A stretch of DNA of 64,000 nt from Auanema rhodensis (lineage: Eukaryota; Animalia; Nematoda), in the NCBI GenBank assembly GCA_964057225.1, contig OZ059897.1, positions 10,912,001 to 10,976,000 of the forward strand, in the 5' to 3' direction. The notes under the pieces were generated by a model that was not told the DNA's origin, did not search any database, and worked only from the letters and a program-made list of their open reading frames with translations. The position numbers and the translations under genes are program-made. Of the stretch, positions 1-64,000 are shown piece after piece; the first letter of the stretch is position 1, and each line of letters starts with the position of its first letter.

Positions 1-69
1 AAATTGAAGAATCTTAGTTCATTTCAGTAACAATAAACACACTAACTTTGTTAAGTTGTTGTAATATCG

Positions 70-141
70 GCCCAAGTAGTATAGTGGTCAGTACTCCACG
101 TTGTGGCCGTGGCGACACAGATTCGATTCCTGTCTTGGGCA
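70..141 (+). tRNA. tRNA-His: tRNA-His(GUG) first copy; B-box variant G53A (GATTCGATTCC), probably impaired
   Basis: Cloverleaf: GCCCAAG/CTTGGGC acceptor, GTAT/GTAC D stem, CCACG-TTGTGGC-CGTGG anticodon arm, ACAGA/CCTGT T stem with A53.C61 mismatch, A73, then TTTTTT. Confidence 0.85.
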
Positions 142-287
142 TTTTTTGTTTTGAAATTAAAATGCTATAAAATTATTGCTTGCTTGTCTTATTAGATTTC
201 TTTAATTTGAATACTTATTCAAGTTATAACAATTTTCGATTTATTCACGTTCAATCAACTGTATTGTTTTCAAAAATAAAGACAAAA

Positions 288-340
288 TTCAATTTCTGTT
301 CATTGAATTAGAATTTTCATGTTGTCACACAGAAATTGAA
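288..340. repeat. 12-bp inverted repeat in the spacer of each monomer (TTCAATTTCTGT ... ACAGAAATTGAA, 29-nt loop; 11 bp in the TCTGG variant)
   Basis: 288-299 is the exact reverse complement of 329-340. Confidence 0.85.
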
Positions 341-401
341 GAATCTTAGTTCAATTCAGTAACAATGAACACACTAACTTTGTTAAGTTGTTGTAATATC
401 G

Positions 402-473
402 GCCCAAGTAATATAGTGGTTAGTACTCCACGTTGTGGCCGTGGCGACACAGATTCGATTCCTGTCTTGGACA
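402..473 (+). pseudogene. tRNA-His pseudogene-type copy (G10A, G53A, G71A); representative of the degenerate class
   Basis: AAGTAATATAG breaks the A box and the 10-25 pair, GATTCG breaks the B box and the 53-61 pair, CTTGGAC gives a C2.A71 mismatch. Confidence 0.8.
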
Positions 474-3400
474 TTTTTTGTTTTGAAATTAAAATGCTAC
501 AAAATTATTGCTTGCTTGTCATGTTAGATTTCTTTAATTCAAATACTTATTTAAGTTCTAACAATTTTTGATTCAATCACGTTCAATTAACTGTATTGTT
601 TTCAAAAATAAAGACATCTTTCAATTTCTGGTCATTGATTTAGAATTTTCATGTTGTCGCACAGAAATTGAAGATTCTTAGTTCAATTCAGTAACAATGA
701 ACACACTAACTTTGTTAAGTTGTTGTGATATCGGCCCAAGTAATATAGTGGTTAGTACTCCACGTTGTGGCCGTGGCGACACAGATTCGATTCCTGTCTT
801 GGGCATTTTTTGTTTTGAAATTAAAATGCTACAAAATTATTGCTTGCTTGTCATGTTAGATTTCTTTAATTTGAATACTTATTCAAGTTATAACAATTTT
901 CGATTAAATCACGTTCATTTAACTGTATTGTTTTCAAAAATAAAGACAAAATTCAGTTTCTGTTCGTTGAATTAGAATTTTCATGTTGTCACACAGAAAT
1001 TGAAGATTCTTAGTTCAATTCAGTAACAATGAACACACTAACTTTGTTAAGTTGTTGTAATATCGGCCCAAGTAATATAGTGGTTAGTACTCCACGTTGT
1101 GGCCGTGGCGACACAGATTCGATTCCTGTCTTGGGCATTTTTTGTTTTGAAATTAAAATGCTATAAACATATTGCTTGCTTGTCATGTTAGATTTCTTTA
1201 ATTCAAATACTTATTTAAGTTCTAACAATTTTTGATTTAATCACGTTCAATCAACTGTATTGTTTTCAAAAATAAAGACAAAATTCAATTTCTGTTCGTT
1301 GAATTAGAATTTTCATGTTGTCACACAGAAATTGAAGAATCTTAGTTCAATTCAGTAACAACGAACACACTAACTTTGTTAAGTTGTTGTAATATCGGCC
1401 CAAGTAATATAGTGGTTAGTACTCCACGTTGTGGCCGTGGCGACACAGATTTGATTCCTGTTTTGGGCATTTTTTGTTTTGAAATTTAAATGCTATAAAA
1501 TTATTGCTTGCTTGTCATGTTAGATTTGTTTAATTCAAATACTTATTTAAGTTCCAACAATTTTCGATTAAATCACGTTCTTTTAACTGTATTGTTTTCA
1601 AAAATAAAGACAAAATTCAATTTCTGTTCGTTGAATTAGAAATTTCATGTTGTCACACAGAAATTGAAGAATCTTAGTTCAATTCAGTAACAACGAACAC
1701 ACTAACTTTGTTAAATTGTTGTAATATCGGCCCAAGTAATATAGTGGTTAGTACTCCACGTTGTGGCCGTGGCGACACAGATTCGATTCCTGTTTTGGGC
1801 ATTTTTTGTTTTGAAATTTAAATGCTATAAAATTATTGCTTGCTTGTCATGTTAGATTTTTTTAATTTGAATACTTATTCAAGTTTTAACAATTTTGGAT
1901 TTAATCACGTTCAATCAACTGTATTGTTTTCAAAAATAAAGACATCTTTCAATTTCTGGTCATTGAATTAGAATTTTCATGTTGTCACACAGAAATTGAA
2001 GAATCTTAGTTCATTTCAGTAACAATGAACACACTAACTTTGTTAAGTTGTTGTAATATCGGCCCAAGTAATATAGTGGTTAGTACTCCACGTTGTGGCC
2101 GTGGCGACACAGGTTCGATTCCTGTCTTGGGCATTTTTTGTTTTGAAATTTAAATGCTATAAAATTATTGCTTGCTTGTCATGTTAGATTTGTTTAATTC
2201 AAATACTTATTTAAGTTCCAACAATTTTCGATTAAATCACGTTCATTTAACTGTATTGTTTTCAAAAATAAAGACAAAATTCAATTTCTGTTCGTTGAAT
2301 TAGAATTTTCATGTTGTCACACAGAAATTGAAGAATCTTAGTTCAATTCAGTAACAACGAACACACTAACTTTGTTAAGTTGTTGTAATATCGGCCCAAG
2401 TAATATAGTGGTTAGTACTCCACGTTGTGGCCGTGGCGACACAGATTCGATTCCTGTTTTGGGCATTTTTTGTTTTGAAATTTAAATGCTATAAAATTAT
2501 TGCTTGCTTGTCATGTTAGATTTTTTTAATTTGAATACTTATTCAAGTTATAACAATTTTGGATTTAATCACGTTCAATCAACTGTATTGTTTTCAAAAA
2601 TAAAGACATCTTTCAATTTCTGGTCATTGAATTAGAATTTTCATGTTGTCACACAGAAATTGAAGAATCTTAGTTCATTTCAGTAACAATAAACACACTA
2701 ACTTTGTTAAGTTGTTGTAATATCGGCCCAAGTAGTATAGTGGTCAGTACTCCACGTTGTGGCCGTGGCGACACAGATTCGATTCCTGTCTTGGGCATTT
2801 TTTGTTTTGAAATTAAAATGCTATAAAATTATTGCTTGCTTGTCTTATTAGATTTCTTTAATTTGAATACTTATTCAAGTTATAACAATTTTCGATTTAA
2901 TCACGTTCAATCAACTGTATTGTTTTCAAAAATAAAGACAAAATTCAATTTCTGTTCATTGAATTAGAATTTTCATGTTGTCACACAGAAATTGAAGAAT
3001 CTTAGTTCAATTCAGTAACAATGAACACACTAACTTTGTTAAGTTGTTGTAATATCGGCCCAAGTAATATAGTGGTTAGTACTCCACGTTGTGGCCGTGG
3101 CGACACAGATTCGATTCCTGTCTTGGACATTTTTTGTTTTGAAATTAAAATGCTACAAAATTATTGCTTGCTTGTCATGTTAGATTTCTTTAATTCAAAT
3201 ACTTATTTAAGTTCTAACAATTTTTGATTCAATCACGTTCAATTAACTGTATTGTTTTCAAAAATAAAGACATCTTTCAATTTCTGGTCATTGATTTAGA
3301 ATTTTCATGTTGTCGCACAGAAATTGAAGATTCTTAGTTCAATTCAGTAACAATGAACACACTAACTTTGTTAAGTTGTTGTGATATCGGCCCAAGTAAT

Positions 3401-5515
3401 ATAGTGGTTAGTACTCCACGTTGTGGCCGTGGCGACACAGATTCGATTCCTGTCTTGGGCATTTTTTGTTTTGAAATTAAAATGCTACAAAATTATTGCT
3501 TGCTTGTCATGTTAGATTTCTTTAATTTGAATACTTATTCAAGTTATAACAATTTTCGATTAAATCACGTTCATTTAACTGTATTGTTTTCAAAAATAAA
3601 GACAAAATTCAATTTCTGTTCGTTGAATTAGAATTTTCATGTTGTCACACAGAAATTGAAGATTCTTAGTTCAATTCAGTAACAATGAACACACTAACTT
3701 TGTTAAGTTGTTGTAATATCGGCCCAAGTAATATAGTGGTTAGTACTCCACGTTGTGGCCGTGGCGACACAGGTTCGATTCCTGTCTTGGGCATTTTTTG
3801 TTTTGAAATTTAAATGCTATAAAATTATTGCTTGCTTGTCATGTTAGATTTGTTTAATTCAAATACTTATTTAAGTTCCAACAATTTTCGATTAAATCAC
3901 GTTCATTTAACTGTATTGTTTTCAAAAATAAAGACAAAATTCAATTTCTGTTCGTTGAATTAGAATTTTCATGTTGTCACACAGAAATTGAAGAATCTTA
4001 GTTCAATTCAGTAACAACGAACACACTAACTTTGTTAAGTTGTTGTAATATCGGCCCAAGTAATATAGTGGTTAGTACTCCACGTTGTGGCCGTGGCGAC
4101 ACAGATTCGATTCCTGTTTTGGGCATTTTTTGTTTTGAAATTTAAATGCTATAAAATTATTGCTTGCTTGTCATGTTAGATTTTTTTAATTTGAATACTT
4201 ATTCAAGTTATAACAATTTTGGATTTAATCACGTTCAATCAACTGTATTGTTTTCAAAAATAAAGACATCTTTCAATTTCTGGTCATTGAATTAGAATTT
4301 TCATGTTGTCACACAGAAATTGAAGAATCTTAGTTCATTTCAGTAACAATAAACACACTAACTTTGTTAAGTTGTTGTAATATCGGCCCAAGTAGTATAG
4401 TGGTCAGTACTCCACGTTGTGGCCGTGGCGACACAGATTCGATTCCTGTCTTGGGCATTTTTTGTTTTGAAATTAAAATGCTATAAAATTATTGCTTGCT
4501 TGTCTTATTAGATTTCTTTAATTTGAATACTTATTCAAGTTATAACAATTTTCGATTTAATCACGTTCAATCAACTGTATTGTTTTCAAAAATAAAGATA
4601 AAATTCAATTTCTGTTCATTGAATTAGAATTTTCATGTTGTCACACAGAAATTGAAGAATCTTAGTTCAATTCAGTAACAATGAACACACTAATTTTGTT
4701 AAGTTGTTGTAATATCGGCCCAAGTAATATAGTGGTTAGTACTCCACGTTGTGGCCGTGGCGACACAGATTCGATTCCTGTCTTGGACATTTTTTGTTTT
4801 GAAATTAAAATGCTACAAAATTATTGCTTGCTTGTCATGTTAGATTTCTTTAATTCAAATACTTATTTAAGTTCTAACAATTTTTGATTCAATCACGTTC
4901 AATTAACTGTATTGTTTTCAAAAATAAAGACATCTTTCAATTTCTGGTCATTGATTTAGAATTTTCATGTTGTCGCACAGAAATTGAAGATTCTTAGTTC
5001 AATTCAGTAACAATGAACACACTAACTTTGTTAAGTTGTTGTGATATCGGCCCAAGTAATATAGTGGTTAGTACTCCACGTTGTGGCCGTGGCGACACAG
5101 ATTCGATTCCTGTCTTGGGCATTTTTTGTTTTGAAATTAAAATGCTACAAAATTATTGCTTGCTTGTCATGTTAGATTTGTTTAATTCAAATACTTATTT
5201 AAGTTCTAACAATTTTTGATTTAATCACGTTCAATTAACTGTATTGTTTTCAAAAATAAAGACAAAATTCAATTTCTGTTCATTGAATTAGAATTTTCAT
5301 GTTGTCACACAGAAATTGAAGAATCTTAGTTCAATTCAGTAACAATGAACACACTAACTTTGTTAAGTTGTTGTAATATCGGCCCAAGTAATATAGTGGT
5401 TAGTACTCCACGTTGTGGCCATGGCGACACAGGTTCGATTCCTGTCTTGGGCATTTTTTGTTTTGAAATTTAAATGCTATAAAATTATTGCTTGCTTGTC
5501 ATGTTAGATTTGTTT

Positions 5516-5654
5516 CCAAGGATGAAGATATGGGAAGGCGGGCCGAAAAGTACAATCTGAAATAGACAAAGTAAAGGAAAACGATAAAAACAAAACTGAA
5601 ATGGAACAAAACATAGAAAAAAGGATAAAAAATAATCGCTAACCGCGACATAGT
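5516..5654. other. ~140-bp non-array segment of unknown origin replacing most of a spacer
   Basis: Array similarity stops after ...TAGATTTGTTT (5515) and resumes at TTGTAATA (5655). The segment is A-rich on + and I saw no match elsewhere in the window. Confidence 0.9.
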
Positions 5655-5665
5655 TTGTAATACCG

Positions 5666-5731
5666 GCCCAAGTAGTATAGTGGTTAGTACTCCACGTTGT
5701 GGCCGTACAGGTTCGATTCCTGTCTTGGGCA
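5666..5731 (+). pseudogene. tRNA-His with 6-nt deletion (GGCGAC: end of anticodon stem plus variable loop); A and B boxes intact
   Basis: Reads GGCCGT-ACAGGTTCG instead of GGCCGTGGCGACACAGGTTCG. Confidence 0.9.
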
Positions 5732-6442
5732 TTTTTTGTTTTGAAATTTAAATGCTATAAAATTATTGCTTGCTTGTCATGTTAGATTTGTTTAATTTAA
5801 ATACTTATTTAAGTTCCAACAATTTTCGATTAAATCACGTTCAATTAACTGTATTGTTTTCAAAAATAAAGACAAAATTCAAAATTGCTTGCTTGTCATG
5901 TTAGATTTCTTTAATTTGAATACTTATTCAAGTTATAACAATTTTGGATTTAATCACGTTCAATCAACTGTATTGTTTTCAAAAATAAAGACATCTTTCA
6001 ATTTCTGGTCATTGAATTAGAATTTTCATGTTGTCACACAGAAATTGAAGAATATTAGTTCATTTCAGTAACAATGAACACACTAACTTTGTTAAGTTGT
6101 TGTAATATCGGCCCAAGTAGTATAGTGGTTAGTACTCCACGTTGTGGCCGTGGCGACACAGATTCGATTCCTGTCTTGGGCATTTTTTGTTTTGAAATTA
6201 AAATGCTATAAACATATTGCTTGCTTGTCATGTTAGATTTGTTTAATTCAAATACTTATTTAAGTTCTAACAATTTTCGATTAAATCACGTTCAATCAAC
6301 TGTATTGTTTTCAAAAATAAAGACATCTTTCAATTTCTGGTCATTGAATTAGAATTTTCATGTTGTCACACAGAAATTGAAGAATCTTAGTTCATTGCAG
6401 TAACAATGAACACACTAACTTTGTTAAGTTGTTGTAATATCG

Positions 6443-6476
6443 GCCCAAGTAGTATAGTGGTCAGTACTCCACGTTG
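6443..6476 (+). pseudogene. 5' half of tRNA-His truncated at G34
   Basis: GCCCAAG...CCACGTTG followed by inverted array sequence. Confidence 0.9.
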
Positions 6477-6606
6477 AAAATTGTTGGAACTTAAATAAGT
6501 ATTTGAATTAAACAAATCTAACATGACAAGCAAGCAATAATTTTATAGCATTTAAATTTCAAAACAAAAAATGCCCAAGACAGGAATCGAACCTGTGTCG
6601 CCACGG
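6477..6606 (-). repeat. Inverted monomer fragment: tRNA-His 3' half (C38-A73), terminator and part of spacer
   Basis: Reverse complement reads CCGTGGCGACACAGGTTCGATTCCTGTCTTGGGCATTTTTTG...TTCCAACAATTTT. Confidence 0.95.
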
Positions 6607-7806
6607 ATTTGAATACTTATTCAAATTATAACAATTTTCGATTTAATCACGTTCAATCAACTGTATTGTTTTCAAAAATAAAGACAAAATTCAATTTCTG
6701 TTCATTGAATTAGAATTTTCATGTTGTCACACAGAAATTGAAGAATCTTAGTTCATTTCAGTAACAATGAACACACTAACTTTGTTAAGTTGTTGTAATA
6801 TCGGCCCAAGTAATATAGTGGTTAGTACTCCACGTTGTGGCCGTGGCGACACAGGTTCGATTCCTGTCTTGGGCATTTTTTGTTTTGAAATTAAAATGCT
6901 ATAAACATATTGCTTGCTTGTCATGTTAGATTTCTTTAATTCAAATACTTATTTAAGTTCTAACAATTTTTGATTTAATCACGTTCAATCAACTGTATTG
7001 TTTTCAAAAATAAAGACAAAATTCAATTTCTGTTCGTTGAATTAGAATTTTCATGTTGTCACACAGAAATTGAAGAATCTTAGTTCATTTCAGTAACAAT
7101 GAACACACTAACTTTGTTAAGTTGTTGTAATATCGGCCCAAGTAATATAGTGGTTAGTACTCCACGTTGTGGCCGTGGCGACACAGGTTCGATTCCTGTC
7201 TTGGGCATTTTTTGTTTTGAAATTTAAATGCTATAAAATTATTGCTTGCTTGTCATGTTAGATTTGTTTAATTCAAATACTTATTTAAGTTCCAACAATT
7301 TTCGATTAAATCACGTTCATTTAACTGTATTGTTTTCAAAAATAAAGACAAAATTCAATTTCTGTTCGTTGAATTAGAATTTTCATGTTGTCACACAGAA
7401 ATTGAAGAATCTTAGTTCAATTCAGTAACAACGAACACACTAACTTTGTTAAGTTGTTGTAATATCGGCCCAAGTAATATAGTGGTTAGTACTCCACGTT
7501 GTGGCCGTGGCGACACAGGTTCGATTCCTGTCTTGGGCATTTTTTGTTTTGAAATTTAAATGCTATAAAATTATTGCTTGCTTGTCATGTTAGATTTGTT
7601 TAATTCAAATACTTATTTAAGTTCCAACAATTTTCGATTTAATCACGTTCAATCAACTGTATTGTTTTCAAAAATAAAGACATCTTTCAATTTCTGGTCA
7701 TTGAATTAGAATTTTCATGTTGTCACACAGAAATTGAAGAATCTTAGTTCATTTCAGTAACAATGAATAGAATAACTTTGTTTAGTTGTTGTAATATTGG
7801 CCCAAG

Positions 7807-7817: not shown

Positions 7818-7849
7818 TTAGTACTCCACGTTGTGGCCGTGGCGACACA

Positions 7850-23735: not shown

Positions 23736-23807
23736 GCCCAAGTAGTATAGTGGTTAGTACTCCACGTTGTGGCCGTGGCGACACAGGTTCGATTCCTGTC
23801 TTGGGCA
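23736..23807 (+). tRNA. tRNA-His: tRNA-His(GUG), canonical copy
   Basis: Same sequence as the 7800 copy. Confidence 0.93.
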
Positions 23808-23971
23808 TTTTTTGTTTTGAAATTAAAATGCTACAAAATTATTGCTTGCTTGTCATGTTAGATTTCTTTAATTTGAATACTTATTTAAGTTATAACAATT
23901 TTCAATTTAATCACGTTCAATCAACTGTATTGTTTTCAAAAATAAAGACAAAATTCAATTTCTGTTCATTG

Positions 23972-24232
23972 TCACTGATATTTTACTTCAACCATATAAA
24001 AGACTCAAATACCGAGTTACATTCTAGAATTTTCACTATCAAAAAGTTTTCTCACTCCCTTCGTAGGCACCAATGGAATATCGACTTTCCTAATCTTCGA
24101 AAAAACGCATCAAGAAATGGAATCGAATACAGAGCGATCAAGACATGGAATTCCTTACCCGACAACTTGATTAACCTTGAGGAAACCAAAAGCTTCAGAA
24201 AACACCTCTACAATACTCTACAAACTCCATAA
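23972..24232 (+). pseudogene. C-terminal 86 aa of a LINE ORF2 (reverse transcriptase-associated tail)
   Basis: Open frame from the insertion edge to TAA at 24230-24232; WNSLP motif. Confidence 0.75.
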
Positions 24233-24709
24233 TGTGATCTAAATAATTAATACGAGTGTTAATTTGTTCATTTTTCATTTTGTTAATTATTTCTCTTTCC
24301 ATAGTCATAACCTTGTTCTGTTTTTCTGTTCGTGACAATTGGCAACAGTTTCCTATTTTCATCCCTTCTTTACTCCTTTGTTACTTCGTTTCATATCTTA
24401 TAGACATGAGTCATACGGATTGAACGCAAGTTATCTCCTATTGTTAGAACGGGCTCGGCTCAACTTATGAGTACCTCCGTACCTAACAACTACCAACAGG
24501 AGATCAGCTTTTATGCTGAACAAACCCCCTGTTTTCTGAAAAAAAAAGGAACTGCCTACAAATATTCACTCTCAGTTTAACTTATTATTTTTATCCACCC
24601 TTCATTTTTTTTTCAATGTTCTTATTGTATGGCTCTTACTCATGTAACTTCTCATTTGTACTAATACCGTTTAGCCTGTAATACTGAACAATAAACCAAT
24701 AAACGTGTA
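23972..24709 (+). mobile_element. 5'-truncated non-LTR retrotransposon (CR1/L2-like LINE) 3' end, 738 bp, copy 1
   Basis: Inserted between TTCATTG and AATTAG with no TSD and no deletion. It encodes ...YRAIKTWNSLPDNLINLEETKSFRKHL..., resembling the WNxLP/SFK-L C-terminus of CR1/L2-group ORF2, followed by a ~480-bp T-rich 3' UTR ending CAATAAAC-CAATAAAC-GTGTA. Confidence 0.8.
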
Positions 24710-26133
24710 AATTAGAATTTTCATGTTGTCACACAGAAATTGAAGAATCTTTGTTCAATTCAGTAACAACGAACACACTAACTTTGTTAAGTTGTTGTAT
24801 TATCGGCCCAAGTAATATAGTGGTTAGTACTCCACGTTGTGGCCGTGGCGACACAGGTTCGATTCCTGTCTTGGGCATATTTTGTTTTGAAATTTAAATG
24901 CTATAAAATTATTGCTTGCTTGTCATGTTAGATTTGTTTAATTCAAATACTTATTTAAGTTCCAACAATTTTCGATTAAATCACGTTCATTTAACTGTAT
25001 TGTTTTCAAAAATAAAGACAAAATTCAATTTCTGTTCGTTGAATTAGAATTTTCATGTTGTCACACAGAAATTGAAGAATCTTAGTTCAATTCAGTAACA
25101 ATGAACACACTAACTTTGTTAAGTTGTTGTAATATCGGCCCAAGTAATATAGTGGTTAGTACTCCACGTTGTGGCCGTGGCGACACAGATTCGATTCCTG
25201 TTTTGGGCATTTTTTGTTTTGAAATTTAAATGCTATAAAATTATTGCTTGCTTGTCATGTTAGATTTGTTTAATTCAAATACTTATTTAAGTTCTAACAA
25301 TTTTTGATTCAATCACGTTCAATTAACTGTATTGTTTTCAAAAATAAAGACATCTTTCAATTTCTGGTCATTGATTTAGAATTTTCATGTTGTCACACAG
25401 AAATTGAAGATTCTTAGTTCAATTCAGTAACAATGAACACACTAACTTTGTTAAGTTGTTGTGATATCGGCCCAAGTAATATAGTGGTTAGTACTCCACG
25501 TTGTGGCCGTGGCGACACAGATTCGATTCCTGTCTTGGGCATTTTTTGTTTTGAAATTAAAATGCTACAAAATTATTGCTTGCTTGTCATGTTAGATTTC
25601 TTTAATTTGAATACTTATTCAAGTTATAACAATTTTTGATTTAATCACGTTCAATCAACTGTATTGTTTTCAAAAATAAAGACAAAATTCAATTTCTGTT
25701 CATTGATTTAGAATTTTCATGTTGTCACACAGAAATTGAAGATTCTTAGTTCAATTCAGTAACAATGAACACACTAACTTTGTTAAGTTGTTGTGATATC
25801 GGCCCAAGTAATATAGTGGTTAGTACTCCACGTTGTGGCCGTGGCGACACAGGTTCGATTCCTGTCTTGGGCATTTTTTGTTTTGAAATTAAAATGCTAC
25901 AAAATTATTGCTTGCTTGTCATGTTAGATTTCTTTAATTTGAATACTTATTCAAGTTATAACAATTTTTGATTTGATCACGTTCAATCAACTGTATTGTT
26001 TTCAAAAATAAAGACAAAATTCAATTTCTGTTCATTGAATTAGAATTTTCATGTTGTCACACAGAAATTGAAGAATCTTAGTTCAATTCAGTAACAATGA
26101 ACAGAATAACTTTGTTTAGTTGTTGTAATATCG

Positions 26134-27865: not shown

Positions 27866-28361
27866 TTTTTTGTTTTGAAATTAAAATGCTATAAACATAT
27901 TGCTTGCTTGTCATGTTAGATTTGTTTAATTCAAATACTTATTTAAGTTCTAACAATTTTCGATTTAATCACGTTCAATCAACTGTATTGTTTTCAAAAA
28001 TAAAGACATCTTTCAATTTCTGGTCATTGAATTAGAATTTTCATGTTGTCACACAGAAATTGAAGAATCTTAGTTCAATTCAGTAACAATGAACACACTA
28101 ACTTTGTTAAGTTGTTGTGATATCGGCCCAAGTAATATAGTGGTTAGTACTCCACGTTGTGGCCGTGGCGACACAGGTTCGATTCCTGTCTTGGGCATTT
28201 TTTGTTTTGAAATTAAAATGCTACAAAATTATTGCTTGCTTGTCATGTTAGATTTCTTTAATTTGAATACTTATTTAAGTTATAACAATTTTCAATTTAA
28301 TCACGTTCAATCAACTGTATTGTTTTCAAAAATAAAGACAAAATTCAATTTCTGTTCATTG

Positions 28362-28622
28362 TCACTGATATTTTACTTCAACCATATAAAAGACTCAAAT
28401 ACCGAGTTACATTCTAGAATTTTCACTATCAAAAAGTTTTCTCACTCCCTTCGTAGGCACCAATGGAATATCGACTTTCCTAATCTTCGAAAAAACGCAT
28501 CAAGAAATGGAATCGAATACAGAGCGATCAAGACATGGAATTCCTTACCCGACAACTTGATTAACCTTGAGGAAACCAAAAGCTTCAGAAAACACCTCTA
28601 CAATACTCTACAAACTCCATAA
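28362..28622 (+). pseudogene. LINE ORF2 C-terminal remnant, copy 2
   Basis: Identical translation in the ORF track. Confidence 0.75.
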
Positions 28623-29099
28623 TGTGATCTAAATAATTAATACGAGTGTTAATTTGTTCATTTTTCATTTTGTTAATTATTTCTCTTTCCATAGTCATAA
28701 CCTTGTTCTGTTTTTCTGTTCGTGACAATTGGCAACAGTTTCCTATTTTCATCCCTTCTTTACTCCTTTGTTACTTCGTTTCATATCTTATAGACATGAG
28801 TCATACGGATTGAACGCAAGTTATCTCCTATTGTTAGAACGGGCTCGGCTCAACTTATGAGTACCTCCGTACCTAACAACTACCAACAGGAGATCAGCTT
28901 TTATGCTGAACAAACCCCCTGTTTTCTGAAAAAAAAAGGAACTGCCTACAAATATTCACTCTCAGTTTAACTTATTATTTTTATCCACCCTTCATTTTTT
29001 TTTCAATGTTCTTATTGTATGGCTCTTACTCATGTAACTTCTCATTTGTACTAATACCGTTTAGCCTGTAATACTGAACAATAAACCAATAAACGTGTA
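28362..29099 (+). mobile_element. CR1/L2-like LINE 3' end, copy 2 (apparently identical to copy 1)
   Basis: Same junctions and, by eye, the same sequence as 23972-24709. Confidence 0.8.
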
Positions 29100-30523
29100 A
29101 ATTAGAATTTTCATGTTGTCACACAGAAATTGAAGAATCTTTGTTCAATTCAGTAACAACGAACACACTAACTTTGTTAAGTTGTTGTATTATCGGCCCA
29201 AGTAATATAGTGGTTAGTACTCCACGTTGTGGCCGTGGCGACACAGGTTCGATTCCTGTCTTGGGCATATTTTGTTTTGAAATTTAAATGCTATAAAATT
29301 ATTGCTTGCTTGTCATGTTAGATTTGTTTAATTCAAATACTTATTTAAGTTCCAACAATTTTCGATTAAATCACGTTCATTTAACTGTATTGTTTTCAAA
29401 AATAAAGACAAAATTCAATTTCTGTTCGTTGAATTAGAATTTTCATGTTGTCACACAGAAATTGAAGAATCTTAGTTCAATTCAGTAACAATGAACACAC
29501 TAACTTTGTTAAGTTGTTGTAATATCGGCCCAAGTAATATAGTGGTTAGTACTCCACGTTGTGGCCGTGGCGACACAGATTCGATTCCTGTTTTGGGCAT
29601 TTTTTGTTTTGAAATTTAAATGCTATAAAATTATTGCTTGCTTGTCATGTTAGATTTGTTTAATTCAAATACTTATTTAAGTTCTAACAATTTTTGATTC
29701 AATCACGTTCAATTAACTGTATTGTTTTCAAAAATAAAGACATCTTTCAATTTCTGGTCATTGATTTAGAATTTTCATGTTGTCACACAGAAATTGAAGA
29801 TTCTTAGTTCAATTCAGTAACAATGAACACACTAACTTTGTTAAGTTGTTGTGATATCGGCCCAAGTAATATAGTGGTTAGTACTCCACGTTGTGGCCGT
29901 GGCGACACAGATTCGATTCCTGTCTTGGGCATTTTTTGTTTTGAAATTAAAATGCTACAAAATTATTGCTTGCTTGTCATGTTAGATTTCTTTAATTTGA
30001 ATACTTATTCAAGTTATAACAATTTTTGATTTAATCACGTTCAATCAACTGTATTGTTTTCAAAAATAAAGACAAAATTCAATTTCTGTTCATTGATTTA
30101 GAATTTTCATGTTGTCACACAGAAATTGAAGATTCTTAGTTCAATTCAGTAACAATGAACACACTAACTTTGTTAAGTTGTTGTGATATCGGCCCAAGTA
30201 ATATAGTGGTTAGTACTCCACGTTGTGGCCGTGGCGACACAGGTTCGATTCCTGTCTTGGGCATTTTTTGTTTTGAAATTAAAATGCTACAAAATTATTG
30301 CTTGCTTGTCATGTTAGATTTCTTTAATTTGAATACTTATTCAAGTTATAACAATTTTTGATTTGATCACGTTCAATCAACTGTATTGTTTTCAAAAATA
30401 AAGACAAAATTCAATTTCTGTTCATTGAATTAGAATTTTCATGTTGTCACACAGAAATTGAAGAATCTTAGTTCAATTCAGTAACAATGAACAGAATAAC
30501 TTTGTTTAGTTGTTGTAATATCG

Positions 30524-32255: not shown

Positions 32256-33102
32256 TTTTTTGTTTTGAAATTAAAATGCTATAAACATATTGCTTGCTTG
32301 TCATGTTAGATTTGTTTAATTCAAATACTTATTTAAGTTCTAACAATTTTCGATTTAATCACGTTCAATCAACTGTATTGTTTTCAAAAATAAAGACATC
32401 TTTCAATTTCTGGTCATTGAATTAGAATTTTCATGTTGTCACACAGAAATTGAAGAATCTTAGTTTAATTCAGTAACAATGAACACACTAACTTTGTTAA
32501 GTTGTTGTAATATCGGCCCAAGTGATATAGTGGTTAGTACTCCACGTTGTGGCCGTGGAGACACAGATTCGATTCCTGTCTTGGGCATTTTTTGTTTTGA
32601 AATTAAAATGCTATAAACATATTGCTTGCTTGTCATGTTAGATTTCTTTAATTCAAATACTTATTTAAGTTCTAACAATTTTTGATTTAATCACGTTCAA
32701 TTAACTGTATTGGTTTCAAAAATAAAGACATCTTTCAATTTCTGGTCATTGATTTAGAATTTTCATGTTGTCACACAGAAATTGAAGATTCTTAGTTCAA
32801 TTCAGTAACAATGAACACACTAACTTTGTTAAGTTGTTGTGATATCGGCCCAAGTAATATAGTGGTTAGTACTCCACGTTGTGGCCGTGGCGACACAGAT
32901 TCGATTCCTGTCTTGGGCATTTTTTGTTTTGAAATTAATATGCTACAAAATTATTGCTTGCTTGTCATGTTAGATTTGTTTAATTCAAATACTTATTTAA
33001 GTTCTAACAATTTTTGATTTAATCACGTTAAATTAACTGTATTGTTTTCAAAAATAAAGACAAAATTCAATTTCTGTTCGTTGAATTAGAATTGTAATAT
33101 CG

Positions 33103-33174
33103 GCCCAAGTAATATAGTGATTAGTACTCCACGTTGTGGCCGTGGCGACACAGGTTCGATTCCTGTCTTGGGCA
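33103..33174 (+). pseudogene. tRNA-His copy lacking 77 bp of 5' flank, with G10A and D-loop GG>GA
   Basis: Spacing from the previous copy is 255 bp; reads GAATTAGAATTGTAATATC and ATAGTGATTAG. Confidence 0.85.
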
Positions 33175-39741: not shown

Positions 39742-39813
39742 GCCCAAGTAATATAGTGGTTAGTACTCCACGTTTTGGCCGTGGCGACACAGATTCGATT
39801 CCTGTTTTGGGCA
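39742..39813 (+). pseudogene. tRNA-His body with anticodon TTG (Gln), plus G10A, G53A, C66T
   Basis: CCACG TT TTG GC CGTGG; anticodon at 39775-39777. Confidence 0.85.
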
Positions 39814-44795: not shown

Positions 44796-47047
44796 TTTTT
44801 TGTTTTGAAATTTAAATGCTATAAAATTATTGCTTGCTTGTCATGTTAGATTTTTTTAATTTGAATACTTTTTCAAGTTTTAACAATTTTGGATTTAATC
44901 ACGTTCAATCAACTGTATTGTTTTCAAAAATAAAGACATCTTTCAATTTCTGGTCATTGAATTTGAATTTTCATGTTGTCACACAGAAATTGAAGAATCT
45001 TAGTTCATTTCAGTAACAATGAACACACTAACTTTGTTAAGTTGTTGTAATATCGGCCCAAGTAGTATAGTGGTTAGTACTCCACGTTGTGGCCGTGGCG
45101 ACACAGATTCGATTCCTGTCTTGGGCATTTTTTGTTTTGAAATTTAAATGCTATAAAATTATTGCTTGCTTGTCATGTTAGATTTGTTTAATTCAAATAC
45201 TTATTTAAGTTCCAACAATTTTCGATTAAATCACGTTCATTTAACTGTATTGTTTTCAAAAATAAAGACAAAATTCAATTTCTGTTCGTTGAATTAGAAT
45301 TTTCATGTTGTCACACAGAAATTGAAGAATCTTAGTTCAATTCAGTAACAACGAACACACTAACTTTGTTAAGTTGTTGTAATATCGGCCCAAGTAATAT
45401 AGTGGTTAGTACTCCACGTTGTGGCCGTGGCGACACAGATTCGATTCCTGTTTTGGGCATTTTTTGTTTTGAAATTTAAATGCTATAAAATTATTGTTTG
45501 CTTGTCATGTTAGATTTGTTTAATTCAAATACTTATTTAAGTTCCAACAATTTTCGATTAAATCACGTTCTTTTAACTGTATTGTTTTCAAAAATAAAGA
45601 CAAAATTCAATTTCTGTTCGTTGAATTAGAATTTTCATGTTGTCACACAGAAATTGAAGAATCTTAGTTCAATTCAGTAACAACGAACACACTAACTTTG
45701 TTAAATTGTTGTAATATCGGCCCAAGTAATATAGTGGTTAGTACTCCACGTTGTGGCCGTGGCGACACAGGTTCGATTCCTGTTTTGGGCATTTTTTGTT
45801 TTGAAACTTAAATGCTATAAAATTATTGCTTGCTTGTCATGTTAGATTTGTTTAATTCAAATACTTATTTAAGTTCTAACAATTTTTGATTTAATCACGT
45901 TCAATCAACTGTATTGTTTTCAAAAATAAAGATATCTTTCAATTTCTGGTCATTGAATTAGAATTTTCATGTTGTCACACAGAAATTGAAGAATCTTAGT
46001 TCATTTCAGTAACAATGAACACACTAACTTTGTTAAGTTGTTGTAATATCAGCCCAAGTAGTATAGTGGTTAGTACTCCACGTTGTGGCCGTGGCGACAC
46101 AGGTTCGATTCCTGTTTTGGGCATTTTTTGTTTTGAAACTTAAATGCTATAAAATTATTGCTTGCTTGTCATGTTAGATTTGTTTAATTCAAATACTTAT
46201 TTAAGTTCTAACAATTTTTGATTTAATCACGTTCAATCAACTGTATTGTTTTCAAAAATAAAGACAAAATTCAATTTCTGTTCATTGAATTAGAATTTTC
46301 ATGTTGTCACACAGAAATTGAAGAATCTTAGTTCATTTCAGTAACAATGAACACACTAACTTTGTTCAGTTGTTGTAATATCGGCCCAAGTAGGATAGTG
46401 GTTAGTACTCCACGTTGTGGCCGTGGCGACACAGATTCGATTCCTGTCTTGGGCATTTTTTGTTTTGAAATTAAAATGCTATAAACATATTGCTTGCTTG
46501 TCATGTTAGATTTGTTTAATTCAAATACTTATTTAAGTTCTAACAATTTTCGATTTAATCACGTTCATTTAACTGTATTGTTTTCAAAAATAAAGACAAA
46601 ATTCAATTTCTGGTCATTGAATTAGAATTTTCATGTTGTCACACAGAAATTGAAGAATCTTAGTTCATTTCAGTAACAATGAACACACTAACTTTGTTAA
46701 GTTGTTGTAATATCGGCCCAAGTAGTATAGTGGTTAGTACTCCACGTTGTGGCCGTGGCGACACAGGTTCGATACCTGTTTTGGGCATTTTTTGTTTTGA
46801 AATTAAAATGCTACAAAATTATTGCTTGCTTGTCATGTTAGATTTTTTTAATTTGAATACTTTTTCAAGTTTTAACAATTTTGGATTTAATCACGTTCAA
46901 TCAACTGTATTGTTTTCAAAAATAAAGACATCTTTCAATTTCTGGTCATTGAATTTGAATTTTCATGTTGTCACACAGAAATTGAAGAATCTTAGTTCAT
47001 TTCAGTAACAATGAACACACTAACTTTGTTAAGTTGTTGTAATATCG

Positions 47048-47119
47048 GCCCAAGTAGTATAGTGGTTAGTACTCCACGTTGTGGCCGTGGCGACACAGGT
47101 TCGATTCCTGTCTTGGGCA
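47048..47119 (+). tRNA. tRNA-His: tRNA-His(GUG), canonical copy
   Basis: Same sequence as the 7800 copy. Confidence 0.93.
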
Positions 47120-49703
47120 TTTTTTGTTTTGAAATTTAAATGCTATAAAATTATTGCTTGCTTGTCATGTTAGATTTGTTTAATTCAAATACTTATTTAA
47201 GTTCCAACAATTTTCGATTAAATCACGTTCATTTAACTGTATTGTTTTCAAAAATAAAGACAAAATTCAATTTCTGTTCGTTGAATTAGAATTTTCATGT
47301 TGTCACACAGAAATTGAAGAATCTTAGTTCAATTCAGTAACAACGAACACACTAACTTTGTTAAGTTGTTGTAATATCGGCCCAAGTAATATAGTGGTTA
47401 GTACTCCACGTTGTGGCCGTGGCGACACAGATTCGATTCCTGTTTTGGGCATTTTTTGTTTTGAAATTTAAATGCTATAAAATTATTGTTTGCTTGTCAT
47501 GTTAGATTTGTTTAATTCAAATACTTATTTAAGTTCCAACAATTTTCGATTAAATCACGTTCTTTTAACTGTATTGTTTTCAAAAATAAAGACAAAATTC
47601 AATTTCTGTTCGTTGAATTAGAATTTTCATGTTGTCACACAGAAATTGAAGAATCTTAGTTCAATTCAGTAACAACAAACACACTAACTTTGTTAAATTG
47701 TTGTAATATCGGCCCAAGTAATATAGTGGTTAGTACTCCACGTTGTGGCCGTGGCGACACAGGTTCGATTCCTGTTTTGGGCATTTTTTGTTTTGAAACT
47801 TAAATGCTATAAAATTATTGCTTGCTTGTCATGTTAGATTTGTTTAATTCAAATACTTATTTAAGTTCTAACAATTTTTGATTTAATCACGTTCAATCAA
47901 CTGTATTGTTTTCAAAAATAAAGATATCTTTCAATTTCTGGTCATTGAATTAGAATTTTCATGTTGTCACACAGAAATTGAAGAATCTTAGTTCATTTCA
48001 GTAACAATGAACACACTAACTTTGTTAAGTTGTTGTAATATCAGCCCAAGTAGTATAGTGGTTAGTACTCCACGTTGTGGCCGTGGCGATACAGGTTCGA
48101 TTCCTGTTTTGGGCATTTTTTGTTTTGAAACTTAAATGCTATAAAATTATTGCTTGCTTGTCATGTTAGATTTGTTTAATTCAAATACTTATTTAAGTTC
48201 TAACAATTTTTGATTTAATCACGTTCAATCAACTGTATTGTTTTCAAAAATAAAGACAAAATTCAATTTCTGTTCATTGAATTAGAATTTTCATGTTGTC
48301 ACACAGAAATTGAAGAATCTTAGTTCATTTCAGTAACAATGAACACACTAACTTTGTTCAGTTGTTGTAATATCGGCCCAAGTAGGATAGTGGTTAGTAC
48401 TCCACGTTGTGGCCGTGGCGACACAGATTCGATTCCTGTCTTGGGCATTTTTTGTTTTGAAATTAAAATGCTATAAACATATTGCTTGCTTGTCATGTTA
48501 GATTTGTTTAATTCAAATACTTATTTAAGTTCTAACAATTTTCGATTTAATCACGTTCATTTAACTGTATTGTTTTCAAAAATAAAGACAAAATTCAATT
48601 TCTGTTCGTTGAATTAGAATTTTCATGTTGTCACACAGAAATTGAAGAATCTTAGTTCAATTCAGTAACAATGAACACAATAACTTTGTTAAGTTGTTGT
48701 AATATCAGCCCAAGTAGTATAGTGGTTAGTACTCCACGTTGTGGCCGTGGCGACACAGGTTCGATACCTGTTTTGGGCATTTTTTGTTTTGAAATTAAAA
48801 TGCTACAAAATTATTGCTTGCTTGTCATGTTAGATTTCTTTAATTTGAATACTTATTCAAGTTATAACAATTTTTGATTTAATCACGTTCAATCAACTGT
48901 ATTGTTTTCAAAAATAAAGACATCATCCAATTTCTGGTCATTGAATTAGAATTTTCATGTTGTCACACAGAAATTGAAGAATCTTAGTTCATTTCAGTAA
49001 CAATGAACACACTAACTTTGTTAAGTTGTTGTAATATCGGCCCAAGTAGTATAGTGGTTAGTACTCCACGTTGTGGCCGTGGCGACACAGGTTCGATACC
49101 TGTTTTGGGCATTTTTTGTTTTGAAATTAAAATGCTACAAAATTATTGCTTGCTTGTCATGTTAGATTTTTTTAATTTGAATACTTTTTCAAGTTTTAAC
49201 AATTTTGGATTTAATCACGTTCAATCAACTGTATTGTTTTCAAAAATAAAGACATCTTTCAATTTCTGGTCATTGAATTTGAATTTTCATGTTGTCACAC
49301 AGAAATTGAAGAATCTTAGTTCATTTCAGTAACAATGAACACACTAACTTTGTTAAGTTGTTGTAATATCGGCCCAAGTAGTATAGTGGTTAGTACTCCA
49401 CGTTGTGGCCGTGGCGACACAGATTCGATTCCTGTCTTGGGCATTTTTTGTTTTGAAATTAAAATGCTATAAACATATTGCTTGCTTGTCATGTTAGATT
49501 TGTTTAATTCAAATACTTATTTAAGTTCTAACAATTTTCGATTTAATCACGTTCAATCAACTGTATTGTTTTCAAAAATAAAGACATCTTTCAATTTCTG
49601 GTCATTGAATTAGAATTTTCATGTTGTCACACAGAAATTGAAGAATCTTAGTTCATTTCAGTAACAATGAACACACTAACTTTGTTAAGTTGTTGTAATA
49701 TCG

Positions 49704-57011: not shown

Positions 57012-57083
57012 GCCCAAGTAGTATAGTGGTTAGTACTCCACGTTGTGGCCGTGGCGACACAGGTTCGATTCCTGTCTTGGGCA
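57012..57083 (+). tRNA. tRNA-His: tRNA-His(GUG), canonical copy
   Basis: Same sequence as the 7800 copy. Confidence 0.93.
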
Positions 57084-57675: not shown

Positions 57676-57747
57676 GCCCAAGTAGTATAGTGGTTAGTAC
57701 TCCACGTTGTGGCCGTGGCGACACAGGTTCGATTCCTGTCTTGGGCA
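57676..57747 (+). tRNA. tRNA-His: tRNA-His(GUG), canonical copy
   Basis: Same sequence as the 7800 copy. Confidence 0.93.
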
Positions 57748-58671
57748 TTTTTTGTTTTGAAATTTAAATGCTATAAAATTATTGCTTGCTTGTCATGTTA
57801 GATTTTTTTAATTTGAATACTTATTCAAGTTTTAACAATTTTGGATTTAATCACGTTCAATCAACTGTATTGTTTTCAAAAATAAAGACATCTTTCAATT
57901 TCTGGTCATTGAATTTGAATTTTCATGTTGTCACACAGAAATTGAAGAATCTTAGTTCATTTCAGTAACAATGAACACACTAACTTTGTTAAGTTGTTGT
58001 AATATCGGCCCAAGTAGTATAGTGGTTAGTACTCCACGTTGTGGCCGTGGCGACACAGATTCGATTCCTGTCTTGGGCATTTTTTGTTTTGAAATTAAAA
58101 TGCTATAAACATATTGCTTGCTTGTCATGTTAGATTTGTTTAATTCAAATACTTATTTAAGTTCTAACAATTTTCGATTTAATCACGTTCAATCAACTGT
58201 ATTGTTTTCAAAAATAAAGACATCTTTCAATTTCTGGTCATTGAATTAGAATTTTCATGTTGTCACACAGAAATTGAAGAATCTTAGTTCATTTCAGTAA
58301 CAATGAACACACTAACTTTGTTAAGTTGTTGTAATATCGGCCCAAGTAGTATAGTGGTCAGTACTCCACGTTGTGGCCGTGGCGACACAGATTCGATTCC
58401 TGTCTTGGGCATTTTTTGTTTTGAAATTAAAATGCTACAAAATTATTGCTTGCTTGTCATGTTAGATTTTTTTAATTTGAATACTTATTTAAGTTATAAC
58501 AATTTTCGATTTAATCACGTTCAATCAACTGTATTGTTTTCAAAAATAAAGACAAAATTCAATTTCTGTTCATTGAATTAGAATTTTCATGTTGTCACAC
58601 AGAAATTGAAGAATCTTAGTTCATTTCAGTAACAATGAACAGAATAACTTTGTTTAAATGTTGTAATATCG

Positions 58672-58743
58672 GCCCAAGTAGTATAGTGGTTAGTACTCCA
58701 CGTTGTGGCCGTGGCGACACAGGTTCGATTCCTGTCTTGGGCA
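58672..58743 (+). tRNA. tRNA-His: tRNA-His(GUG), canonical copy
   Basis: Same sequence as the 7800 copy. Confidence 0.93.
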
Positions 58744-60662: not shown

Positions 60663-60734
60663 GCCCAAGTAGTATAGTGGTTAGTACTCCACGTTGTGGC
60701 CGTGGCGACACAGGTTCGATTCCTGTCTTGGGCA
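60663..60734 (+). tRNA. tRNA-His: tRNA-His(GUG), canonical copy
   Basis: Same sequence as the 7800 copy. Confidence 0.93.
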
Positions 60735-61657
60735 TTTTTTGTTTTGAAATTAAAATGCTATAAACATATTGCTTGCTTGTCATGTTAGATTTCTTTAATT
60801 AAATACTTATTTAAGTTCTAACAATTTTCGATTTAATCACGTTCAATCAACTGTATTGTTTTCAAAAATAAAGACATCTTTCAATTTCTGGTCATTGAAT
60901 TTGAATTTTCATGTTGTCACACAGAAATTGAAGAATCTTAGTTCATTTCAGTAACAATGAACACACTAACTTTGTTAAGTTGTTGTAATATCAGCCCAAG
61001 TAGTATAGTGGTTAGTACTCCACGTTGTGGCCGTGGCTACACAGGTTCGATTCCTGTTTTGGGCATTTTTTGTTTTGAAATTAAAATGCTACAAAATTAT
61101 TGCTTGCTTGTCATGTTAGATTTCTTTAATTTAAATACTTATTCAAGTTATAACAATTTTTGATTTAATCACGTTCAATCAACTGTATTGTTTTCAAAAA
61201 TAAAGACATCATCCAATTTCTGGTCATTGAATTAGAATTTTCATGTTGTCACACAGAAATTGAAGAATCTTAGTTCAATTCAGTAACAATGAACACAATA
61301 ACTTTGTTAAGTTGTTGTAATATCAGCCCAAGTAGTATAGTGGTTAGTACTCCACGTTGTGGCCGTGGCGACACAGGTTCGATTCCTGTTTTGGGCATTT
61401 TTTGTTTTGAAATTAAAATGCTATAAACATATTGCTTGCTTGTCATGTTAGATTTGTTTAATTCAAATACTTATTTAAGTTCTAACAATTTTCGATTTAA
61501 TCACGTTCAATCAACTGTATTGTTTTCAAAAATAAAGACATCTTTCAATTTCTGGTCATTGAATTAGAATTTTCATGTTGTCACACAGAAATTGAAGAAT
61601 CTTAGTTCATTTCAGTAACAATGAACACACTAACTTTGTTAAGTTGTTGTAATATCG

Positions 61658-61729
61658 GCCCAAGTAGTATAGTGGTTAGTACTCCACGTTGTGGCCGTGG
61701 CGACACAGGTTCGATTCCTGTCTTGGGCA
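61658..61729 (+). tRNA. tRNA-His: tRNA-His(GUG), canonical copy
   Basis: Same sequence as the 7800 copy. Confidence 0.93.
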
Positions 61730-63317
61730 TTTTTTGTTTTGAAATTTAAATGCTATAAAACTATTGCTTGCTTGTCATGTTAGATTTTTTTAATTTGAAT
61801 ACTTATTCAAGTTTTAACAATTTTGGATTTAATCACGTTCAATCAACTGTATTGTTTTTAAAAATAAAGACATCTTTCAATTTCTGGTCATTGAATTTGA
61901 ATTTTCATGTTGTCACACAGAAATTGAAGAATCTTAGTTCATTTCAGTAACAATGAACACACTAACTTTGTTAAGTTGTTGTAATATCGGCCCAAGTAGT
62001 ATAGTGGTTAGTACTCCACGTTGTGGCCGTGGCGACACAGATTCGATTCCTGTCTTGGGCATTTTTTGTTTTGAAATTAAAATGCTATAAACATATTGCT
62101 TGCTTGTCATGTTAGATTTGTTTAATTCAAATACTTATTTAAGTTCTAACAATTTTCGATTTAATCACGTTCAATCAACTGTATTGTTTTCAAAAATAAA
62201 GACATCTTTCAATTTCTGGTCATTGAATTAGAATTTTCATGTTGTCACACAGAAATTGAAGAATCTTAGTTCATTTCAGTAACAATGAACACACTAACTT
62301 TGTTAAGTTGTTGTAATATCGGCCCAAGTAGTATAGTGGTCAGTACTCCACGTTGTGGCCGTGGCGACACAGATTCGATTCCTGTCTTGGGCATTTTTTG
62401 TTTCGAAATTAAAATGCTATAAACATATTGCTTGCTTGTCATGTTAGATTTCTTTAATTCAAATACATATTTAAGTTCTAACAATTTTTGATTTAATCAC
62501 GTTCAATTAACTGTATTGTTTTCAAAAATAAAGACAAAATTCAATTTCTGGTCATTGAATTTGAATTTTCATGTTGTCACACAGAAATTGAAGAATCTTA
62601 GTTCATTTCAGTAACAATGAACACACTAACTTTGTTAAGTTGTTGTAATATCGGCCCAAGTAGTATAGTGGTTAGTACTCCACGTTGTGGCCGTGGCGAC
62701 ACAGATTCGATTCCTGTCTTGGGCATTTTTTGTTTTGAAATTAAAATGCTATAAACATATTGCTTGCTTGTCATGTTAGATTTGTTTAATTCAAATACTT
62801 ATTTAAGTTCTAACAATTTTCGATTTAATCACGTTCAATCAACTGTATTGTTTTCAAAAATAAAGACATCTTTCAATTTCTGGTCATTGAATTAGAATTT
62901 TCATGTTGTCACACAGAAATTGAAGAATCTTAGTTCATTTCAGTAACAATGAACACACTAACTTTGTTAAGTTGTTGTAATATCGGCCCAAGTAGTATAG
63001 TGGTCAGTACTCCACGTTGTGGCCGTGGCGACACAGATTCGATTCCTGTCTTGGGCATTTTTTGTTTCGAAATTAAAATGCTATAAACATATTGCTTGCT
63101 TGTCATGTTAGATTTCTTTAATTCAAATACATATTTAAGTTCTAACAATTTTTGATTTAATCACGTTCAATTAACTGTATTGTTTTCAAAAATAAAGACA
63201 AAATTCAATTTCTGGTCATTGAATTTGAATTTTCATGTTGTCACACAGAAATTGAAGAATCTTAGTTCATTTCAGTAACAATGAACACACTAACTTTGTT
63301 TAGTTGTTGTAATATCG

Positions 63318-63389
63318 GCCCAAGTAGTATAGTGGTTAGTACTCCACGTTGTGGCCGTGGCGACACAGGTTCGATTCCTGTCTTGGGCA
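63318..63389 (+). tRNA. tRNA-His: tRNA-His(GUG), canonical copy
   Basis: Same sequence as the 7800 copy. Confidence 0.93.
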
Positions 63390-64000
63390 TTTTTTGTTTT
63401 GAAATTAAAATGCTACAAAATTATTGCTTGCTTGTCATGTTAGATTTCTTTAATTCAAATACATATTTAAGTTCTAACAATTTTCGATTTAATCACGTTC
63501 AATCAACTGTATTGTTTTCAAAAATAAAGACATCTTTCAATTTCTGGTCATTGAATTAGAATTTTCATGTTGTCACACAGAAATTGAAGAATCTTAGTTC
63601 ATTTCAGTAACAATGAACACACTAACTTTGTTAAGTTGTTGTAATATCGGCCCAAGTAGTATAGTGGTCAGTACTCCACGTTGTGGCCGTGGCGACACAG
63701 ATTCGATTCCTGTCTTGGGCATTTTTTGTTTCGAAATTAAAATGCTATAAACATATTGCTTGCTTGTCATGTTAGATTTCTTTAATTCAAATACATATTT
63801 AAGTTCTAACAATTTTTGATTTAATCACGTTCAATTAACTGTATTGTTTTCAAAAATAAAGACAAAATTCAATTTCTGGTCATTGAATTTGAATTTTCAT
63901 GTTGTCACACAGAAATTGAAGAATCTTAGTTCATTTCAGTAACAATGAACACACTAACTTTGTTTAGTTGTTGTAATATCGGCCCAAGTAGTATAGTGGT

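Follow-up and report, generated by a model that had tools for sequence, protein, structure and literature searches.

A large tRNA-His(GUG) tandem array in the nematode Auanema rhodensis is probably a tRNA-gene-derived satellite

A stretch of 64,000 nucleotides from the nematode Auanema rhodensis (GenBank assembly GCA_964057225.1, contig OZ059897.1, hereafter C5, positions 10,912,001-10,976,000; the whole stretch is referred to below as the window) is made up of head-to-tail copies of a 332-bp unit built around a tRNA-His(GUG) gene, and forms part of a much larger block of such units. We propose that this block is probably a tRNA-gene-derived satellite, whose copy number reflects repeat amplification and whose copies drift without constraint. 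The proposal draws on direct observation of the anatomy of the array, its copy numbers, its mutation spectrum, the lack of constraint on the tRNA body, the duplication structure and the transposon-rich setting. Most of the copies are damaged at positions that matter for a tRNA gene, and variants accumulate in the tRNA body as freely as in the spacer, while the same tRNA is encoded by a small and strictly conserved set of genes elsewhere in the genome.

Anatomy of the array

In the window ARAGORN recovered 186 tRNA genes, each of them on the + strand; 185 were called as tRNA-His(GTG) and one as tRNA-Gln(TTG). The Rfam tRNA model added a further unit with a 6-nt deletion at 5666-5731, bringing the total to 187 tRNA-His(GUG)-derived units arranged head-to-tail on the + strand. 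Measured from anchor to anchor, 172 of the 186 intervals are exactly 332 bp and eight more are 331, 333 or 334 bp; Tandem Repeats Finder (TRF) likewise reports a period of 332 over the whole window, in two blocks (1-33093 and 33092-64000) that meet at about 33,093. The six odd intervals measure 284, 445 and 693 bp across 5409-6831, 255 bp at 32875-33130, and 1070 bp at both 23763-24833 and 28153-29223. A fixed unit with a tRNA gene is thus repeated head-to-tail far beyond chance, as expected of a tandem tRNA-gene array. The initial annotation of this DNA, made from the letters alone, had described about 189 units of near-invariant length at a 332-bp pitch, belonging to one tRNA species in one orientation, with both ends beyond the window. 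Its count was close, and the rest of the description agrees with what we found, as the lone Gln call is a mutated His copy (see below) and matches on C5 extend to both sides of the window.

1..64000, + strand: slice of the 332-bp tRNA-His tandem array, 187 units, continuing past both window ends (ARAGORN, TRF, spacing and C5 matches)
70..401, + strand: representative 332-bp unit (sequence and per-column diversity), with the encoded G-1 at 69, the tRNA body at 70-141, the T-run at 142-153 and an AT-rich spacer of 260 bp

Each unit thus comprises a 72-nt tRNA body preceded by G-1, then a T-run (TTTTTTGTTTT) and then the 260-bp AT-rich spacer. The T-run, which is the usual terminator of RNA polymerase III (Pol III), is almost invariant among the window units (per-column diversity, pi 0.007). 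TRF found no short tandem repeat inside the spacer in the window, and Rfam returned no RNA family other than tRNA in the 14 kb tested.

Most copies depart from the canonical gene

As the canonical sequence we took the single 72-nt sequence that is common to five dispersed tRNA-His genes and to an 11-gene mini-array outside the block. Most copies in the window differ from this intact gene, a point that the initial annotation had missed: in 139 of the 187, one or more Watson-Crick or wobble pairs are broken. Common changes are G10A (89 copies), which produces an A10.C25 mismatch in the A box, G53A (114 copies), which produces an A53.C61 mismatch in the B box, and C66T (47 copies), which leaves a G7.U66 wobble; further changes affect the acceptor stem, position 37 and the anticodon. 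Both G10 and G53 belong to the internal Pol III promoter, and the G53-C61 pair is invariant in tRNA. With exact canonical copies amounting to 34 of 187, the array as a whole lacks the intact A and B boxes and the full set of cloverleaf pairs that would mark a working tRNA family. Three copies illustrate the range:

47048..47119, + strand: canonical tRNA-His copy with the same sequence as the dispersed genes (67.3 bits; cloverleaf with a minimum free energy (MFE) of -26.3 kcal/mol)
734..805, + strand: common G10A + G53A double variant with the A10.C25 and A53.C61 mismatches (53.4 bits; MFE -22.5 kcal/mol)
39742..39813, + strand: pseudogene-like His-derived copy called as tRNA-Gln(TTG), with the anticodon change G34T as well as G10A, G53A and C66T (MFE -18.1 kcal/mol, without a cloverleaf)

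A real tRNA-Gln gene at 39742 was considered and rejected, this being a His copy with four changes. Predicted folding indicates that the mutants lose 3.4-8 kcal/mol of MFE relative to the canonical copy; a copy with G53A only (-22.9 kcal/mol) is predicted to lose the cloverleaf, whereas the G10A + G53A copy (-22.5 kcal/mol) keeps it.

The same picture holds beyond the window. The exact canonical 72-mer occurs 681 times genome-wide against at least 2,057 matches to the tRNA core, or about one third. Canonical copies number 57 of 169, 33 of 128, 13 of 56 and 5 of 16 in the other sampled blocks; their share ranges from 11% to 64% from block to block, in no regular pattern. About 45% of 483 sampled copies (61% of those in the window) no longer have the B-box G53, and G10A is equally common. 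Both G10A and G53A are common to distant blocks, whereas C66T is nearly confined to the window, with 47 occurrences here, one among 56 copies at 11.02-11.04 Mb and none in the other sampled blocks.

As a separate observation, all four G/A combinations at tRNA positions 10 and 53, which lie 43 bp apart, are common in the window; this points to exchange or conversion inside the tRNA body, or to recurrent mutation.

The tRNA body drifts like the spacer

For a comparison of the two parts of the unit we stacked 368 units of exactly 332 bp, drawn from the window, from the forward blocks to its left and from an inverted block, and took alleles present in at most two copies as recent mutations. Such rare alleles number 17 over the 72 tRNA sites and 62 over the 260 spacer sites, that is 0.236 versus 0.238 per site (binomial p = 1). 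The distribution of segregating columns is similar (34 of 72 in the tRNA versus 132 of 260 in the spacer; Fisher p = 0.69), and after sites were split into G/C and A/T classes no significant depletion of variants in the tRNA body was seen by either measure. Within the block, then, the tRNA body does not show the conservation relative to spacer that characterizes a working tRNA family.

The mini-array outside the block, in which the units have a 157-bp pitch, serves as a control. None of its 72 tRNA columns is variable, as against 16 of its 85 spacer columns (Fisher p = 2.8e-5). Invariant tRNA bodies between variable spacers imply that this genome does bear the mark of selection on tRNA-His genes that are in use, a mark that is missing from the large block. 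As most block copies are damaged and drift as freely as the spacers, their number does not appear to be set by a need for histidine tRNA.

tRNA-His genes outside the block

Five single tRNA-His genes are dispersed over C4, C5 and C6 with unrelated flanks, and all are canonical. The mini-array, at C5:9.083 Mb (C5:9083000-9087000), holds 11 identical canonical genes in three short blocks; it probably represents the His cluster in use. Two further loci encode a second isodecoder, in which the 6:67 pair is compensated. Outside the block, at least 18 tRNA-His genes are strictly conserved. This number is close to the 17 tRNA-His genes of Caenorhabditis elegans, and no array comparable to the present one is described in the paper on these genes (Rao and Jackman 2015, PMC4338351). 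Sequences flanking the dispersed His genes and the mini-array showed no significant similarity to the 260-bp spacer that could point to its progenitor.

All tRNA-His loci, both arrayed and dispersed, have an encoded G-1 preceded by TATCG or TATTG and the discriminator A73, and no match to the Thg1 domain (PF04446) was detected in the genome. An encoded G-1 with A73 and without a detectable Thg1 is the unusual mode known from C. elegans (PMC4338351), which is apparently common to Auanema.

Duplications, inserts and rearrangements

The 172 regular monomers of the window fall into 106 distinct sequences, and 99 of them have an identical twin. Twins are separated by lags of 2,988, 1,992, 2,656 and 1,660 bp, corresponding to 9, 6, 8 and 5 units, and by a lag of 4,390 bp. 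These higher-order repeats, together with co-amplified inserts, are signatures of unequal exchange. The features concerned, and two further irregular stretches, are the following:

45056..49111, + strand: 6-unit (1,992-bp) higher-order repeat with tRNA variants in the same order (equal-score pairs 1,992 bp apart; nine identical monomer pairs at lag 1992)
23972..24709, + strand: 738-bp insert, a dispersed repeat resembling a long terminal repeat (LTR), at unit position 236 (sequence comparison)
28362..29099, + strand: second 738-bp insert at the same unit position 236 (six identical monomer pairs at lag 4390)
5516..6803, + strand: rearranged stretch with a 139-bp foreign insert (5516-5654), the 6-nt-deleted tRNA (5666-5731), partial units and a 131-bp inverted piece of a unit (6476-6606)
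32848..33102, + strand: short 255-bp unit with a 77-bp spacer deletion, at the junction of the two TRF blocks (TRF, spacing)

The stretches compared around the two 738-bp inserts (1,165 bp) are 99.9% identical. Given this identity and the equal unit position, we interpret them as one insertion that was carried along in a 4,390-bp (11-unit) tandem duplication. The 738-bp repeat itself is present in eight full-length copies, 96-99% identical, on C3, C4, C7 and C8. On C3, two copies with the same orientation are separated by 3.6 kb, as the two ends of a full element would be.

Extent and chromosomal setting of the block

The assembly comprises 180,911,798 bases in 112 contigs, of which the chromosome-size ones measure about 21-25 Mb. 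Copies were counted genome-wide with a 35-nt tRNA core pattern allowing at most two mismatches, alongside a control pattern: the core matched 1,928 forward and 129 reverse sites, and the control matched none. The resulting figure of about 2,057 is a lower bound on copies, and most of these sites are not individually listed. With two window units as queries, matches span C5:10,462,361 to 11,044,623; among the matches listed, all but about 18 loci fall between C5 10,172,419 and about 11,044,623. The block therefore covers about 0.87 Mb (C5:10.17-11.04 Mb), lying 44-48% along the 23.1-Mb contig, near its middle.

At the level of sequence we read the window and the left 200 kb (C5:10,122,001-10,322,000), and also sampled 11.02-11.04 Mb. 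Within the left 200 kb, 52% of which is covered by tandem repeats, the array has a sharp left edge at 10,172,419 and is split into blocks by other DNA. An inverted block of about 128 units at C5:10190588-10237432 (about 10.19-10.24 Mb) holds nearly all of the reverse-strand matches found genome-wide. No tandem repeats occur in the 50 kb left of the array. In this left flank, long open frames with a family match (C5:10152224-10170701) encode a chromodomain (gypsy) integrase, fragments of a Polinton/Maverick-type DNA polymerase B and tandem Tc1/mariner transposases, and no ordinary genes were seen among its long open frames. The array itself is interrupted over C5:10181932-10315599 by Ty3/gypsy and Pao/BEL LTR retroelements with long open frames.

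Two further observations concern this region. The left edge (C5:10172419-10180950) is formed by a compound higher-order unit of 871, 1078 and 1742 bp, composed of 332-, 331- and 208-bp sub-units, whose copies are 98-99% identical. One of the interrupting retroelements has a 2,954-codon frame that includes a domain resembling a viral fusion glycoprotein (PF24664).

Germline restriction and the origin of the block

A preprint on the A. rhodense APS4 germline assembly (180.9 Mb, seven chromosome scaffolds; bioRxiv 10.64898/2026.08.27.747507) reports 19,554 annotated tRNA loci, classes "only 215" of them as pseudogenes, and states that germline-restricted tandem repeats include "arrays of 5S rRNA, several tRNA loci and U2". 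According to the same source, read depth over repeat-rich regions is 29-fold as against 236-fold, which its authors ascribe to somatic elimination, backed by telomere-addition sites and fluorescence in situ hybridization; HiFi reads are said to map uniquely in repeats, and a break site is quoted on chromosome 5 at 16,502,174. As a general proposal the authors suggest that repeats are amplified in eliminated regions under weak selection (bioRxiv 10.64898/2026.08.27.747507). The present block is dense in repeats and transposons, poor in genes and close to the centre of an autosome, as are germline-restricted blocks, and it appears to be the same class of object as the germline-restricted tRNA, 5S and U2 arrays of the preprint. 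Its position, its transposon-rich setting and the break site on chromosome 5 fit a layout in which 10.17-11.04 Mb falls within a central germline-restricted segment, and we consider it quite likely that the block is discarded from the soma with that segment. That this genome contains tRNA arrays has already been published in outline (bioRxiv 10.64898/2026.08.27.747507). The main text of the preprint gives one sentence to such arrays and does not describe the His block, its size, its decay or its lack of constraint; what is new relative to that text is the lack of constraint quantified with an internal control, and the contrast between 215 pseudogenes and about 1,400 non-canonical copies of the His gene alone. 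Beyond this preprint, our literature search found no other report on nematode tRNA arrays.

As to how the block was amplified, where it is retained and whether it is transcribed, we infer the following. A 332-bp unit, consisting of a tRNA-His(GUG) gene with its G-1, T-run terminator and spacer, would have been amplified by unequal crossing-over or replication slippage. The working supply of tRNA-His would come from the at least 18 strictly conserved genes outside the block, leaving the block copies supernumerary, each of them effectively invisible to selection and mutating at the rate of the spacer. Damaging changes such as G10A, G53A and C66T could then have spread through multi-unit duplication. 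The block would most probably lie in a germline-restricted segment, where selection on repeats is expected to be weak; with about one third of its copies still canonical, it might be transcribed by Pol III wherever it is present.

Several points weigh against this proposal. Mean nucleotide diversity in the window is about half as high in the tRNA body as in the spacer (0.027 versus 0.051), a difference that we attribute to fewer old high-frequency variants in the former. This leaves room for weak past constraint or for preferential amplification of intact units, and about 680 canonical copies remain. All mutant copies still score 50-64 bits with the Rfam tRNA model, against a cut-off of 29 bits, and their loss of function is a prediction from their sequence. 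The stretches at 10.32-10.88, 10.89-10.91 and 10.98-11.02 Mb, the region beyond 11.04 Mb and the right boundary enter the analysis as match coordinates at most. For germline restriction, which is probable, a break-motif pattern rebuilt from the text description for O. tipulae (PMC13060919) gave 6 matches on C5 versus 7 for its reversed control, no more than expected by chance.

Alternative explanations

The block could instead be a germline provisioning battery, that is, a germline-only set which supplies tRNA-His in bulk to oocytes and early embryos and is then discarded, in the manner of the oocyte-type 5S genes of Xenopus. The roughly 680 canonical copies with intact terminators would suit such a function, as would the germline restriction of 5S, U2 and several tRNA arrays, which encode RNAs needed in bulk (bioRxiv 10.64898/2026.08.27.747507). 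We nevertheless regard it as unlikely. Two thirds of the copies have changes at invariant sites and are no more constrained than the spacer, while the small conserved His cluster illustrates how selection on a used tRNA gene looks in the same genome; the canonical fraction also changes haphazardly from block to block over its range of 11% to 64%, and histidine is a low-use amino acid. The arraying of many tRNA families in this genome agrees with a provisioning role, and it bears as well on the initial annotation, which would have been refuted by the arraying of all tRNA families in the lineage together with a lack of chromatin specialisation. That is largely what is found, in the form of a second array on C4 and of the 19,554 tRNA loci (bioRxiv 10.64898/2026.08.27.747507), and histidine does not stand out. 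Satellite-type amplification, one of the two causes that the initial annotation had offered in place of translational demand, is supported by the at least 18 conserved genes outside the block, by the two thirds of block copies that are non-canonical and by the equal frequency of rare variants in tRNA body and spacer.

The array on C4 was noted in the genome-wide tRNA search as a large array of a 73-nt tRNA at C4:18565922-18939185, with a pitch of about 377 bp and copies on both strands.

A structural role seems more doubtful still. Under this explanation the block would be an element of chromosome identity in the germline, in which the third of the copies with intact boxes recruits TFIIIC/condensin or a dedicated binder and thereby provides a central region for pairing or homologue recognition in meiosis, comparable to a pairing centre, or a chromatin barrier, before it is discarded. 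The block is indeed essentially limited to one chromosome and sits near its middle (10.17-11.04 of 23.1 Mb), and the authors of the preprint raise the possibility that central repeats specific to one chromosome help homologues to pair (bioRxiv 10.64898/2026.08.27.747507). Nothing in the sequence, however, points to a centromeric, TFIIIC/condensin or barrier role, the other cause offered in the initial annotation, and of the 187 window copies 114 no longer have the B-box G53 and 89 the A-box G10. Parts of the spacer (unit positions 253-264, for example) show almost no variation, but low diversity of this kind is within expectation where a few old variants dominate diversity. A function as a centromere satellite was rejected, as rhabditid nematodes are holocentric, which makes such a role unlikely, and the sequence offers no evidence for it.

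An assembly artefact, in which an over-expanded or mis-assembled array hides a far smaller true copy number, is very improbable: long near-identical tandem repeats are hard to assemble and depth over repeat-rich regions is low (29-fold versus 236-fold), but the units are distinguishable (106 distinct monomers among 172), with ordered higher-order patterns and unique transposon insertions, and the preprint reports unique HiFi mapping and explains the low depth by somatic elimination (bioRxiv 10.64898/2026.08.27.747507).

Significance and comparison with other arrays

If the block is a tRNA-gene-derived satellite as we propose, it offers a natural example of an essential-gene sequence amplified where selection cannot see single copies, for which a small conserved cluster encoding this tRNA elsewhere in the genome supplies the control. 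It is also a caution for annotation: standard tRNA finders score the mutated copies far above threshold (50-64 versus 29 bits). The figure of 215 pseudogenes among 19,554 loci may thus overstate the number of functional tRNA genes, judged by Rfam scores and not by the pseudogene test of tRNAscan-SE itself. The variants A10, A53 and U66 provide ready-made markers for whether germline-restricted arrays are expressed.

Long arrays of tRNA genes are known from Entamoeba histolytica. Units there carry from one to five distinct tRNA genes with short tandem repeats between them, and almost the whole tRNA gene complement of the organism is contained in them. The Auanema block resembles these in having tRNA genes in long tandem arrays, which in Entamoeba make up a sizeable part of the genome and have been proposed to play a structural role (10.64898/2026.07.06.736064). 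It is not an array of the Entamoeba type, with repeats in the spacers and the main tRNA gene set inside the arrays: each unit has a single gene, TRF finds no short repeat in the spacer, and a separate conserved set of tRNA-His genes lies outside. Other precedents are the oocyte-type 5S genes and the 3.18-kb tDNA repeat of Xenopus and the tRNA clusters of zebrafish and Arabidopsis, in which Pol III genes are present in hundreds to thousands of tandem copies that are partly silenced or germline-only and are retained in all cells. The present block shares with these the amplification of a Pol III gene to such numbers, and differs from them in that most of its copies carry changes that break a promoter box or a stem and in that it is probably lost from the soma. 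In organization it resembles classical satellite DNA that evolves by unequal crossing-over with higher-order repeats, as seen in the fixed unit length, the single orientation with local inversions, the duplications of 5, 6, 8, 9 and 11 units, the co-amplified transposon inserts and the neutral drift of the whole unit. Unlike classical satellites, its unit is built around a recognizable Pol III gene, of which about one third of the copies are still intact.

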